From assembly GCF_001194135.2 (NCBI RefSeq), contig NC_068981.1, forward strand, positions 21,608,792 through 21,672,791: DNA of 64,000 bases, in the 5' to 3' direction. The position numbers and the translations under genes were made by a program. The notes under the pieces are model-generated. The model was not told where the DNA came from, made no database searches, and was given only the letters and a program-made list of their open reading frames with translations. How positions within the stretch are numbered: position 1 is the stretch's first letter; each line of letters starts with the position of its first letter. This stretch comes from Octopus bimaculoides. Taxonomy: Eukaryota. This document shows, piece after piece, positions 7,924 to 53,589 of the stretch.

Positions 7924-7976
7924 ATGCCACCCAACGTTCAACGTCTTCTTCCTGTCGAGGAAAGTCCACAAACAAG
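7924..7976 (+). CDS. RNF31: HOIP-like coding exon 1 (MPPNVQRLLPVEESPQT), phase-2 end
   Basis: ATG at 7924 and donor aag|gtaact. Frame joins exon 2. No homology support for this peptide. Confidence 0.45.
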
Positions 7977-8285
7977 GTAACTTGAATGCTATAGCAATAT
8001 ATGATCTGAGAATTTTGCTTGTTTTCTTTACCCTTGTTTGCTTAAGCTCCTTGATATTGAATTAATAGATTTAAGGATGTTATATATCTTGAAAACTTTC
8101 CTATTGAGGTACAGTAAAATCATATCGAGATAACCACGCTCTTGATTGACATGGCGATGTATGATATGAGAATTTTACTATTTTCTTTACTCTAGTTTGT
8201 TTAAGCTCATCATTATTGAATTAGTATAATTGAGGGTGTTATATATATATATATGTATATATATATATATATGTATATATATATA

Positions 8286-9280
8286 NNNNNNNNNNNNNNN
8301 NNNNNNNNNNNNNNNNNNNNNNNNNNNNNNNNNNNNNNNNNNNNNNNNNNNNNNNNNNNNNNNNNNNNNNNNNNNNNNNNNNNNNNNNNNNNNNNNNNNN
8401 NNNNNNNNNNNNNNNNNNNNNNNNNNNNNNNNNNNNNNNNNNNNNNNNNNNNNNNNNNNNNNNNNNNNNNNNNNNNNNNNNNNNNNNNNNNNNNNNNNNN
8501 NNNNNNNNNNNNNNNNNNNNNNNNNNNNNNNNNNNNNNNNNNNNNNNNNNNNNNNNNNNNNNNNNNNNNNNNNNNNNNNNNNNNNNNNNNNNNNNNNNNN
8601 NNNNNNNNNNNNNNNNNNNNNNNNNNNNNNNNNNNNNNNNNNNNNNNNNNNNNNNNNNNNNNNNNNNNNNNNNNNNNNNNNNNNNNNNNNNNNNNNNNNN
8701 NNNNNNNNNNNNNNNNNNNNNNNNNNNNNNNNNNNNNNNNNNNNNNNNNNNNNNNNNNNNNNNNNNNNNNNNNNNNNNNNNNNNNNNNNNNNNNNNNNNN
8801 NNNNNNNNNNNNNNNNNNNNNNNNNNNNNNNNNNNNNNNNNNNNNNNNNNNNNNNNNNNNNNNNNNNNNNNNNNNNNNNNNNNNNNNNNNNNNNNNNNNN
8901 NNNNNNNNNNNNNNNNNNNNNNNNNNNNNNNNNNNNNNNNNNNNNNNNNNNNNNNNNNNNNNNNNNNNNNNNNNNNNNNNNNNNNNNNNNNNNNNNNNNN
9001 NNNNNNNNNNNNNNNNNNNNNNNNNNNNNNNNNNNNNNNNNNNNNNNNNNNNNNNNNNNNNNNNNNNNNNNNNNNNNNNNNNNNNNNNNNNNNNNNNNNN
9101 NNNNNNNNNNNNNNNNNNNNNNNNNNNNNNNNNNNNNNNNNNNNNNNNNNNNNNNNNNNNNNNNNNNNNNNNNNNNNNNNNNNNNNNNNNNNNNNNNNNN
9201 NNNNNNNNNNNNNNNNNNNNNNNNNNNNNNNNNNNNNNNNNNNNNNNNNNNNNNNNNNNNNNNNNNNNNNNNNNNNNNNN
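8286..9280. other. Assembly gap
   Basis: Run of N. Confidence 1.
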
Positions 9281-9539
9281 CCTCCATGGTCTGAAACATA
9301 GGATTCCGTAAAAAAAAAAAAAAAAATTTAAAAGGGGGGGTATACCCAGATTACATATACTCCATCTCCACCGAAAAAAATATTCCGGATTTTTGTTACC
9401 CACCCTTCATGAATCCTAAAAGTTCCACTCTTTTTCGAATTGTTTTTAAAAATCAGTTTGAAAGGGACTAATGCAGTTTCGCCCCTCACTTTGAAAAATG
9501 CATTTTTTTGAAAAATTTTTTTCGGATTCCCATGTTTTA

Positions 9540-10020
9540 GATGTCGGAGATTACGAATATGCAAAAAAAAAAAAAAAGAATTAATTTTACTCCACCCCAC
9601 ATCAATTTAAATTTTGAATTTTGTTTACTTTAAAGAGATCGTAGCGAATTGATGAACGTATGCAAATCGAAATTAGATATAAACAAAAACATTAATGTGA
9701 AAAGAATTTGCGTTTTATTTGTGTTTGCTTCAAATAATCGTAAATATAATGGAAATTAAATACACACCATTTTATGTGAAACAAACATTAATGTTATAAA
9801 GTTTAATAAGAGGCTCAAATTTCACCCCCTCCCCCAATTTTAAATTTTGAACTTTTTCAATGGTGGTATTTGGGGTGCGGGTAAATTTTTTGGTAAATTT
9901 TCAGATTAACACCCGCACGATTTTCACAAGGGTTTTAGGGTTAGGGTTTTAGCGTGCGGGTGTTAATCTGAAAATTTACGAATTTCTTTTTTTTTTTGCA
10001 TATTCGTAATCTCCGACATC
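9540..10020. repeat. Nested inverted repeats (foldback / MITE-like)
   Basis: Arms 9540-9581 and 9980-10020. Perfect 27-bp arms at 9893-9919 and 9953-9979. Confidence 0.85.
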
Positions 10021-51781: not shown

Positions 51782-51924
51782 ATGAGTCATGTAAATTTTG
51801 ACACAGAATCTAAAGAACAAGTCGATGTGTGTCCTGTGATTGAACAGAAAGAAATCTCGTCTGATACTTTCAAAGATGCCAAATGTGGTAAATGTGTTTC
51901 ACCGAATAACGCTGGTTTTTGCAC
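51782..51924 (+). CDS. RNF31: HOIP-like exon 19, LDD zinc finger
   Basis: FDTESKEQVDVCPVIEQKEI...KCGK...AGFC (human CRVIEQKEV...CGK...AGLC). Phase-2 end, gtaagt. Confidence 0.96.
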
Positions 51925-52804
51925 GTAAGTTCAAAGATTTTTTATCTTGTATTCTGTAAGATGAGATACATATATGAACTTGTTGGTAATCAAATATCAA
52001 GAAAGAATATGGGATAATTTGAGATGTATCTCTATTCAGCCTCTACCAGCATAGAACATGCTTTGATACTTGTAGGGATTATACATGTGTAGGCCTGGCT
52101 GTATGGTTAAAATCTTTGCTTCACAATCATCTGGCTTTGTGTTATGTTTCACTGTGTAGAAACTTGAGCAAGTGTCTTTTACTATAATCCCTAACTGACC
52201 AAAACCTTGTGAGTGGGTTTCATTGATAGAAACTGAAAGAAACTGGTTATACACATCTGTTTATTATGTACATTATTTACATACTGTGGTTGGCCTAGGG
52301 CTATATATATATATATATATATATTAACCAACTAATTTGCTAGTTGCAGAACCAGTGACTGTCTAACACTTTTTTTTCTATATGTATATATATTGTAAGC
52401 TGGGTTAGACTACTGCATTGTCTAGCTGTCGAGTATCCATCACTGAAGATGATCTAATAAGATTGAAATGATGTGATATGATGGTCTCTGAGCTAGGAGA
52501 GGAGGGAGTTCTCTCCCCACATGCAATACATATCAAGTGCAAAGTGCACTGAATAGCCAGCTGAAGGAAGCGTCCTCTTGAGGTTAAAATAACAGTATTG
52601 TCTGTCCTTAAAGAACATCCATGTTTGAGTGGTGATAAACGTTACTTTTATATATATATCATCATTATTTAGTATTCATGTTTCATGCAAGCAGTTGAAT
52701 CCACATATACATGGAATATGAACATTTTTGGATGCTGTAAATGTTATTTACATGTTATATTTTAATGTCTCTATGTACTTTATCAAATAACTTATGTGTT
52801 GTAG

Positions 52805-52970
52805 GGACCATTACAAGGAATATTTAATAACGTTGATCAATGAAAACAAAGTCGACCCTATTGAGTTGTTCACAAAACAGAACATTATACAAGTTCTTTC
52901 TCGCTATGACAAAACTGCCCCAGACCAAGGCAATCAGTCAGAAAGTGAATATATCAACACTCTCAAAAAG
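52805..52970 (+). CDS. RNF31: HOIP-like exon 20, LDD
   Basis: DHYKEYLITLINENKVDPIELF (human AHYKEYLVSLINAHSLDPATLY). aag|gtaacc. Confidence 0.96.
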
Positions 52971-53556
52971 GTAACCTGCTATTTTTCTCTCTCAACTGCT
53001 TTACTCACTTTTACTTTTGCTTTTAGATGATATGCAAAAGGAAAATTTAAAGAAATAAACCTTTCTAATTTTGGCACAAGGCGAGCAATTTTGATGGGAA
53101 GGGGAAACCGATTACATTGTTCCTAGTACTCGTCATCATTGATTAATGTTCGTTTTCCATGCTGGCATGGGTTTGGTGCTTATTTTATTGACCCTAAAAG
53201 GATTAAAGGCAAAGTTGATTTCTGTGGCATTTGAACTAGGAATATAAAGAGCCATAAGAAATGCAACGAAGCATTTTTCCTTGATGCTCTAACAATTCTG
53301 CTGGTTCACTTGTCTTTGTTTAAATAAAATCATGGCTCTTCATCTTCTCAATGGATTCAGTTGTCTTTGTGTTCAACATTTGATCACTCTCTTCTTCTGG
53401 CAACGATCACACACACACACACACACACACACACATATATATATACACACACACACACATATATATATACACACACACACACACATATATACACACACAC
53501 ACATATGTATTTTATATGCATTATATATAACAAAGAATATTTATTTCTATTTTCAG

Positions 53557-53589
53557 TTGCTGCAGCAAGTTGAACCAATTTTGAAATGA
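53557..53589 (+). CDS. RNF31: HOIP-like terminal exon 21 (LLQQVEPILK*)
   Basis: ttctattttcag, phase 0, TGA at 53587-53589. Confidence 0.8.
   Translation: MLQQVEPILK

Follow-up and report, generated by a model that had tools for sequence, protein, structure and literature searches.

A probable single-copy HOIP (RNF31) orthologue in Octopus bimaculoides with a conserved catalytic core and a diverged PUB-type N-terminus

Human HOIP (RNF31), the ligase of head-to-tail (Met1-linked) ubiquitin chains, is 1072 amino acids (aa) long. The arthropod LUBEL proteins are far longer, reaching ~2,900 aa in the fly (CG11321), where mutant numbering runs to C2704 (PMC5090701), and 3087 aa in the shrimp, whose PvLUBEL is without a PUB domain (PMC12154395). 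Flies are without HOIL-1L, SHARPIN and OTULIN, and their LUBEL likewise carries no PUB domain (PMC5090701). In the mollusc Aplysia, HOIP (LOC101849805) and HOIL1 have been catalogued in silico, with the PUB InterPro entry among the criteria and no separate SHARPIN gene (PMC9334734). OTULIN has been dated to the bilaterian ancestor (PMC5381560). The subject here is the HOIP locus of Octopus bimaculoides, which lies within a 64,000-nucleotide (nt) stretch of eukaryotic DNA (G000:C1:21,608,792-21,672,791), part of a 199.9-Mb contig in a 2.34-Gb genome. That whole stretch is called the window below, and its first letter is position 1. An earlier reading of its letters (the original prediction) proposed a HOIP-like ligase of about 1166 aa hidden in 21 small exons of an animal that was probably a cephalopod, and stated that Drosophila LUBEL lacks a PUB domain, in agreement with the published description (PMC5090701).

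The window contains a complete spliced HOIP/RNF31 gene on the + strand, running from an ATG at 7924 to a stop codon ending at 53589 and spanning ~45.7 kb. The encoded product is letter-for-letter identical to RefSeq XP_014786196.1 (P0001; 1268 aa), named by NCBI 'E3 ubiquitin-protein ligase RNF31 isoform X1 [Octopus bimaculoides]' and also filed under gene LOC106880662 and UniProt A0A0L8FX27. Orthologues bearing the RNF31 name are on record for O. sinensis, O. vulgaris and Argonauta hians, and the best named homology-search matches of the octopus protein are RNF31 of Octopus, Argonauta and fish. We put the probability that this locus is the real and intact single-copy O. bimaculoides orthologue of HOIP/RNF31 at roughly 85%. 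The extent of the gene and its cephalopod origin were both anticipated correctly by the original prediction, but the gene is not hidden: it has carried the RNF31 name in RefSeq and UniProt since the first O. bimaculoides annotation, alongside named relatives. A literature search found no paper pairing 'Octopus bimaculoides' with RNF31. The searchable literature likewise yielded no functional study of linear ubiquitination in any mollusc, in line with the earlier remark that none was known in this lineage.

The octopus protein follows the module order of vertebrate HOIP, with an extended PUB-type domain, a B-box-like finger, an NZF-like finger, a UBA pair, RING1-IBR-RING2 (RBR) and the LDD, and its length is similar to that of the human protein. 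Aplysia HOIP belongs to the same family and has the same architecture. Pfam matches the LDD (PF18091) over the full profile (E 1.7e-33; 115 bits against a cut-off of 23) and the HOIP-type UBA pair (UBA_HOIP, PF16678) at aa 679-820 (E 8.6e-24; 84.7 bits against 22.4), and both IBR and IBR_1 exceed their cut-offs. The UBA, the RBR with its GGCIH motif and the LDD that had been recognised from the letters are thus all present. Among PDB sequences, the RBR-LDD region matches human HOIP/RNF31 at E 1.7e-93, a similarity well outside what chance would give; the next RBR family, RNF144A, reaches only E 1.4e-6. Alignment to human HOIP (5edv) gives 40% identity over 357 columns. Human C885, H887, R935 and D936 correspond to octopus C1093, H1095, R1143 and D1144, all conserved, as are all of the RING1, IBR and RING2 zinc ligands checked against 5edv (22/22). 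The only deviation among the LDD positions checked is human C916, which aligns to a Ser with a Cys at the next residue. Human numbering in this alignment is anchored at the RING1 cysteine that we take to be Cys699, an assumption consistent with a Cys landing at 885 and a His at 887.

Across the 2.34-Gb genome, PF18091 matches two places only, exons 20 and 21 of the octopus RNF31 gene itself, and there is therefore no LDD paralogue. A tree of IBR-RING2 sequences unites the HOIP-like proteins, arthropod LUBEL included, with support of 99/97 and splits them from octopus HOIL-1 and another octopus RBR protein. Within this clade, the octopods and a sequence from run ERR4031017 group as sisters (100/99). 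The tree has two outgroups and serves as a consistency check rather than a full phylogeny. The phylogeny and the paralogue search, both proposed with the original prediction, hence place the gene inside the HOIP clade and leave it as the only carrier of PF18091.

The most likely mechanism is that of human HOIP, by which the octopus protein would make Met1-linked chains. RING1 would bind a ubiquitin-charged conjugating enzyme (E2~Ub), and the ubiquitin would be passed to Cys1093 of RING2 as a thioester. The LDD, through Arg1143 and Asp1144, would position the acceptor ubiquitin, whose Met1 amino group would attack the thioester with His1095 as the general base, the product being Met1-linked chains. 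The UBA pair probably docks the ubiquitin-like domain (UBL) of octopus HOIL-1, which would yield a two-subunit core resembling the complex that assembles linear ubiquitin chains (LUBAC).

Thirteen exons encode the protein from the UBA pair onwards. Exon 10 (30677-31036; aa 572-691) contains a linker and the start of the UBA pair, exon 11 (35568-35813; aa 692-773) continues the UBA region, and exon 12 (36728-36943; aa 774-845) holds the second part of the pair. A helical region and the first RING1 ligands, C906 and C909, are encoded by exon 13 (38174-38389; aa 846-917), RING1 by exon 14 (40133-40306; aa 918-975), and the RING1-IBR linker with the start of the IBR by exon 15 (41894-41995; aa 976-1009). 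The IBR occupies exon 16 (43882-43971; aa 1010-1039) and ends in exon 17 (45441-45555; aa 1040-1078), which also encodes the IBR-RING2 helix. RING2, with catalytic Cys1093 and His1095 in the motif GGCIHFTC, lies in exon 18 (47096-47214; aa 1078-1117). The zinc-finger part of the LDD, with Arg1143 and Asp1144, is encoded by exon 19 (50227-50340; aa 1118-1155). The LDD continues in exon 20 (51782-51924; aa 1156-1203; PF18091 genome match at 51764-51928) and in exon 21 (52805-52970; aa 1203-1258; genome match at 52797-52904), which encodes its C-terminal helices. Exon 22 (53557-53589; aa 1259-1268) adds LLQQVEPILK and the stop codon.

The gene model was reached in two steps. The 14 C-terminal exons (28294-53589) were first joined from the raw sequence alone through AG/GT boundaries, which gives a 980-aa open frame ending at the stop codon 53587-53589 and matching the LDD (PF18091, E 1e-33), UBA_HOIP (PF16678, E 5e-24) and IBR domains. 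All 1268 residues of P0001 were then mapped onto the window, which resolves into 22 exact blocks separated by 21 introns, each with a single donor/acceptor solution and all GT-AG. Two boundaries of the first model, acceptor 30689 and donor 43968, were replaced by 30677 and 43971 in accordance with the RefSeq protein and the unique-solution test. A start of exon 9 at 28140, suggested by the phase after the zinc-finger exon, was dropped once the 55-nt exon 8 was found. Isoform X2 (XP_014786197.1; 1186 aa) is X1 without exon 11, whose 82 aa belong to the UBA region, and the 21 exons and ~1166 aa proposed earlier come close to this 21-exon form; for X1 the figures are 22 coding exons and 1268 aa. 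The earlier remark that many exons are missing from the track of open reading frames (ORFs) is correct, and it is explained by five exons of just 28, 33, 39, 53 and 55 nt.

The closest non-octopod relative in the database, the 1252-aa protein P0003 from run ERR4031017, is encoded by one uninterrupted ORF (181-3939) on a 4126-nt contig. This contig is too short for introns and is therefore transcript-like. Octopus exons 3-22 are collinear with it and show no gaps at the junctions, the 28-nt and 55-nt exons included. The Argonauta model spans octopus exons 7-22, and the RBR-LDD exons are 62-87% identical to Argonauta and highly identical to O. sinensis.

The same gene might nevertheless begin elsewhere. 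Exon 1 (7924-7976; aa 1-18, MPPNVQRLLPVEESPQT) carries the annotated start and matches P0001 exactly, yet it is the least certain exon, being unique to the O. bimaculoides model: nothing corresponds to it in O. sinensis, O. vulgaris, Argonauta or the ERR4031017 transcript. Exon 2 (14221-14259; aa 18-31, IIDKPGEENMETK) includes Met28, at which the O. sinensis model starts, and its sequence is conserved in that model and in the O. vulgaris one. It is quite possible, if short of probable, that exon 1 is a prediction artefact and that translation starts at Met28 or in an exon lying within a 995-N or a 246-N gap of the assembly, two large gaps that exons 1 and 2 flank. METKCPSQ…, a stretch within exon 2, opens the RefSeq model of O. 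sinensis; in the O. vulgaris model, exon 2 is preceded by other sequence that looks transposon-like; and nothing in Argonauta or the ERR4031017 transcript aligns with the 31 aa of exons 1-2. In its favour, exon 1 offers an ATG, an uninterrupted frame and, in phase with exon 2, a donor that could be used (AAG|GTAACT), and NCBI keeps the exon in both isoforms. A start at Met28 would shorten the protein by ~27 residues and leave its domains unchanged.

In the O. vulgaris RNF31-like protein CAI9715908.1 (P0184), an N-terminal extension of ~100 residues (MPKLCRYEYHQANWETINNQLQIIDWDLYL…), similar to a retroelement ORF, is fused onto exon 2. This extension is probably a gene-prediction artefact.

On the evidence of profile comparison and predicted fold, residues 32-214 are a diverged homologue of the extended PUB domain of HOIP. 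The N-terminal helical extension of the HOIP-type domain falls in exon 3 (17954-18158; aa 31-99), the core helix alphaA and the degenerate segment of the pocket for PUB-interacting motifs (PIMs; …FLLYLQNLCNDLLKATASTKLQIIPKRCYDDIKKVK) in exon 4 (19937-20068; aa 100-143), and the C-terminal half (GADHILKKIGF…HPYPGFIKK) in exon 5 (22492-22677; aa 144-205). Exon 6 (24008-24035; aa 206-215) is a 28-nt linker exon encoding LLEESEVEQ and is collinear with the transcript-like contig of P0003. Pfam PUB (PF09409) has no match at E<=10 in the N-termini of the octopus and ERR4031017 proteins, and phmmer of the N-terminus against PDB sequences finds nothing. Single-sequence methods thus miss the domain, which is detected only through intermediates and profiles. 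An exhaustive phmmer search with residues 32-264 against 1.8 billion representatives returned mostly B-box fingers. It also aligned query residues 16-178 to a Tegillarca granosa 'PUB domain-containing protein' (KAJ8303184.1, P0046; E 3e-6) and query residues 20-178 to P0067 (E 2e-5), and retrieved hagfish RNF31 and a Priapulus protein. The stretch aligned in P0046, P0067, P0044 and P0063 is Pfam PUB above the gathering cut-off.

Profile comparisons agree with this assignment. A cephalopod-only profile (A2) aligns by hhalign to a profile of PUB-positive sequences over 163 columns with a probability of 98.8% and E 1e-16. Against the PDB, human HOIP PUB structures fill the six top places for A2, with alignments running from end to end, though at an E of only 0.0045. 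A mixed profile (A1), which contains PUB-positive sequences, reaches E 7e-46 in the same search but was rejected as circular evidence since it includes fish RNF31; A2 was used instead. A1 also matches the PUB structures of PNGase, UBXD1 and SPATA2. From the mixed alignment, AlphaFold gives a confident model, with a predicted local distance difference test score (pLDDT) of 87.2 and a predicted template modelling score (pTM) of 0.84. In Foldseek, its 11 best matches are ten HOIP PUB chains (TM 0.68-0.75, ~3 Å root-mean-square deviation, ~180 columns; 0.73-0.75 for 4oyj/4juy) and the SPATA2 PUB 5ljm, after which the matches are noise. The octopus domain shares its core fold with the PUB domains of PNGase, UBXD1 and SPATA2 but has in addition the HOIP-specific N- and C-terminal helical extensions, and its TM score is ~0.74 to HOIP versus 0.54 to SPATA2.

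The PIM pocket is a different matter. Elliott et al. 2014 (PMC4017264) describe the pocket of human HOIP as Ile78, Tyr82, Asn85, Pro92, Tyr94, Val104 and Tyr124 and single out Asn102 as its 'cornerstone'. The octopus residues at the seven former positions are Tyr, Leu, Asp, Ser, Lys, Arg and Phe. A 3-residue deletion falls at Asn101/Asn102, Trp95 is replaced by Leu and Phe105 by Cys. The segment ATASTKLQIIPKRCYDDIKKVKG contains no Asn anywhere, whatever the alignment, and hardly varies among three Octopus species. Asn85, Val104 and Tyr124 persist in the ERR4031017 protein, which has a His in the Asn102 column. Most pocket residues are retained in other invertebrate HOIP-like proteins; the bivalve, P0067 and hagfish proteins retain Tyr82, Trp95, Asn102, Phe105 and Tyr124. 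The octopod domain therefore differs from that of Tegillarca granosa, which both exceeds the Pfam cut-off and keeps these five residues, as well as from vertebrate HOIP. The PUB-bearing ligase of the original prediction survives at the level of homology and predicted fold, whereas Pfam PUB finds no match and the pocket residues are nearly all replaced.

Canonical PIM binding appears unlikely in octopods. Because the pocket is not conserved, recruitment of OTULIN-like proteins, SPATA2-like proteins or p97 by the classical PIM-PUB contact is doubtful. Alternatively, the octopus domain could be fully functional and, by way of a remodelled pocket or a non-canonical motif, still recruit OTULIN-like, SPATA2-CYLD or p97 partners as the vertebrate one does. 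The fold-level homology is kept, the near identity of the pocket segment in three Octopus species suggests constraint, OTULIN-like and SPATA2-like proteins are encoded in the genome, and the N-termini of cephalopod otulin-like proteins contain an acidic-aromatic patch (SEFED / LEYED). We nonetheless consider full function unlikely, given the replaced pocket positions, the cornerstone segment without Asn and the absence of a canonical D-[LM]-Y-R motif from the otulin-like N-termini. Mutation of human HOIP to N102D or Y82A weakens OTULIN antagonism of LUBAC-induced NF-kB activity (PMC4017264).

The zinc fingers between the PUB-type domain and the UBA pair have diverged as well. Exon 7 (25266-25416; aa 215-265) encodes a B-box-like finger at aa 216-253 that resembles an ANCHR-like B-box (E 2.9e-4, below the Pfam cut-off) and accounts for many B-box matches in phmmer. 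It is followed by a 55-nt linker exon, exon 8 (26587-26641; aa 265-283). Exon 9 (28294-29157; aa 284-571) encodes a region that is long and poorly conserved compared with the zinc finger-UBA stretch of vertebrate HOIP. Within it lies a single NZF-like finger at aa 517-539 (WKCSTCGHKN…), which reaches 21.6 bits for the RanBP zinc finger against a cut-off of 27. Fish have three such fingers, and in the ERR4031017 protein no NZF is matched at all. NZF domains contact ubiquitin through a Thr-Phe pair. In fish, hagfish, a mite and another invertebrate, Thr and then V, Y, L, F or K occupy the positions at which the octopus finger carries Gly-His, and the octopus finger is probably not a canonical ubiquitin binder.

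The octopus genome encodes a HOIL-1/RBCK1 orthologue at G000:C20:47607353-47638020, with exons for a UBL-like region, an NZF, RING1, IBR, RING2 and the HOIL-1-specific C-tail. Identity to the query is 53% in the IBR, 65% in RING2 and 63% in the C-tail. The query served as a lead only; the reciprocal test used the octopus peptides, which match human RBCK1 among PDB sequences at E 6.6e-80 and ARIH1 at E 2.7e-4. Further upstream, the N-terminal LUBAC-tethering region finds a collinear but weak match (E 0.49 in a region of 40 kb).

The OTULIN family (PF16218) is represented by two tandem genes, G000:C24:1940941-1944958 and 1955682-1961799. In both, the catalytic motifs are intact (RGDNYCGIRS for the Cys, TEDDRHYNI for the His), and they share one internal exon that is 100% identical at the protein level. 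The 'otulin-like' proteins of O. vulgaris and Argonauta (301 and 291 aa) have short N-termini, MATSSEFEDL… and MATSLEYEDS…, in which no canonical D-[LM]-Y-R PIM is found. In one 382-aa ORF, the stretch at G000:C7:56625774-56626133 resembles SPATA2_PUB at 35.6 bits (cut-off 27). The ORF also contains an NLELYTR stretch, a possible PIM. In having HOIL-1, OTULIN-family and SPATA2-like genes, the octopus resembles vertebrates. The SHARPIN PH domain (PF16764), by contrast, has no match in the octopus genome in a search whose control genomes were uninformative, and the HOIL-1 query found one HOIL-1/SHARPIN-type NZF locus only and no second. Of the partners singled out for a search by the original prediction, HOIL-1 and OTULIN-like genes were recovered, and SHARPIN was not in the search with uninformative controls.

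Arthropod LUBEL is an invertebrate HOIP orthologue with B-box, NZF, UBA and RBR-LDD modules and a homologous catalytic core, and the octopus ligase might act alone as Drosophila LUBEL does, with no LUBAC-type complex. LUBEL is active without partners (PMC5090701), and both the SHARPIN search, with its uninformative controls, and the single NZF locus would fit such a picture. We regard it as improbable. A HOIL-1 orthologue with a UBL-like exon exists in the octopus, the UBA pair, which docks the UBLs of HOIL-1L and SHARPIN in vertebrates, is well conserved in octopus HOIP, and Drosophila is the exception in lacking HOIL-1L (PMC5090701). The octopus protein also departs from LUBEL in its length, 1268 aa rather than the >2,800 aa of a LUBEL-type protein, in its PUB-fold domain and in the presence of HOIL-1 and OTULIN-like genes in the same genome.

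Several points weigh against reading the locus as an intact orthologue that works as human HOIP does. Met1 synthesis is predicted from residue conservation. Support for the splicing comes from the RefSeq model, the canonical splice sites and collinear sequence in relatives, and the 5' end is the soft part of the gene model, with Met28 in exon 2 as a possible true start. The pocket residues were assigned from sequence alignments of a divergent region that contains an indel. When AlphaFold was given a two-sequence, cephalopod-only alignment, the model was unusable (pLDDT 43.5), and the fold evidence is therefore not independent of sequence homology to PUB-positive proteins. Lastly, an NZF without the Thr-hydrophobic pair means that recruitment to ubiquitin or NEMO may differ from the vertebrate mechanism. 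A rival reading, in which the RBR gene is decaying or neofunctionalised and has ceased to make Met1 chains, would fit the degenerate accessory modules (a lost PUB pocket and one atypical NZF versus three fingers in fish and none in P0003) but is highly improbable for a single-copy gene whose frame is open over 22 exons with canonical splice sites throughout, whose catalytic and zinc-binding RBR residues are all conserved and whose RBR-LDD exons stay so close to those of Argonauta and O. sinensis.

As gene discovery, the intact orthologue adds little, the locus having long been named RNF31 and molluscan HOIP and HOIL1 having already been listed in silico. It confirms a lophotrochozoan with a vertebrate-like toolkit (a PUB-fold HOIP, HOIL-1, OTULIN-like and SPATA2-like proteins) as against the reduced LUBEL system of arthropods. 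Two minor observations are new, the degenerate PUB pocket and the atypical NZF: both have diverged beyond recognition in octopods, which would bear on the evolution of coupling between ligase and deubiquitinase if confirmed experimentally. A broader proposal, tentative and on balance doubtful, is that the regulatory periphery of the Met1 ligase has been rewired in cephalopods, with the PUB fold kept but the PIM pocket and the NZF dipeptide lost and the duplicated OTULIN-like enzymes without a canonical PIM, while the catalytic core is intact. In that case the coupling between the ligase and its deubiquitinases would be lost or would run through a new interface, and cephalopods would offer a natural experiment on the evolution of LUBAC-deubiquitinase coupling.

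Five runs of N interrupt the window, all intronic and none touching an exon: 8286-9280 (995 N) in intron 1, 14366-14611 (246 N) in intron 2, 33557-33566 (10 N) in intron 10, and 47249-47288 (40 N) and 48710-48719 (10 N) in intron 18. The frame across them is therefore set by splicing and not by gap length. Protein alignments to human HOIP, O. sinensis and the ERR4031017 protein are unbroken across the exon pairs that flank the gap-bearing introns, and on these alignments no conserved exon appears to be hidden in the gaps. On the two sides of the gap at 33557-33566 stands an exact direct duplicate of 44 nt (33513-33610; GTGGCTGCACC…CAGCTGGA). Such a duplicate indicates that the contig ends overlap and that the gap is an unmerged assembly join from which no sequence is missing. 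The same gap sits within a LINE-like reverse-transcriptase ORF on the - strand.

Other elements in the window are mostly repetitive. Intron 2 contains a Mos1-type mariner transposase remnant (15405-16421, + strand) that is broken across frames, with an HTH_48 match at E 4.5e-19 and typical C-terminal transposase motifs in ORFs at 16071-16418. In intron 1, a 138-aa ORF (13632-14048, - strand) has a homeodomain-like helix-turn-helix (HTH_23, E 6.8e-5) and is probably another Tc1/mariner-type transposase fragment. Downstream of the gene, a retrotransposon fragment (62377-63176, - strand; RVT_1, E 1e-10) lies beside a PHD finger (62725-62946; E 6e-7). A short interspersed repeat, whose translation reads …HASMGWT…LRTGEPDGYTRLQSDLAEFLQLDALPNANHSESVVGAFTCHRH…, occurs in both orientations in many introns, for example at 20612-20899, 37393-37556, 42689-43009 and 48563-48830 on the + strand and at 34773-35114 and 38949-39302 on the - strand. 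It looks like a SINE-type element and accounts for many spurious ORFs. Intron 19 holds a full-model Rfam match to U4 RNA (51421-51582, - strand) at 46.3 bits against a gathering threshold of 46; its fold is no better than that of shuffled sequence (z -1.29), and the match is possibly a U4 pseudogene.

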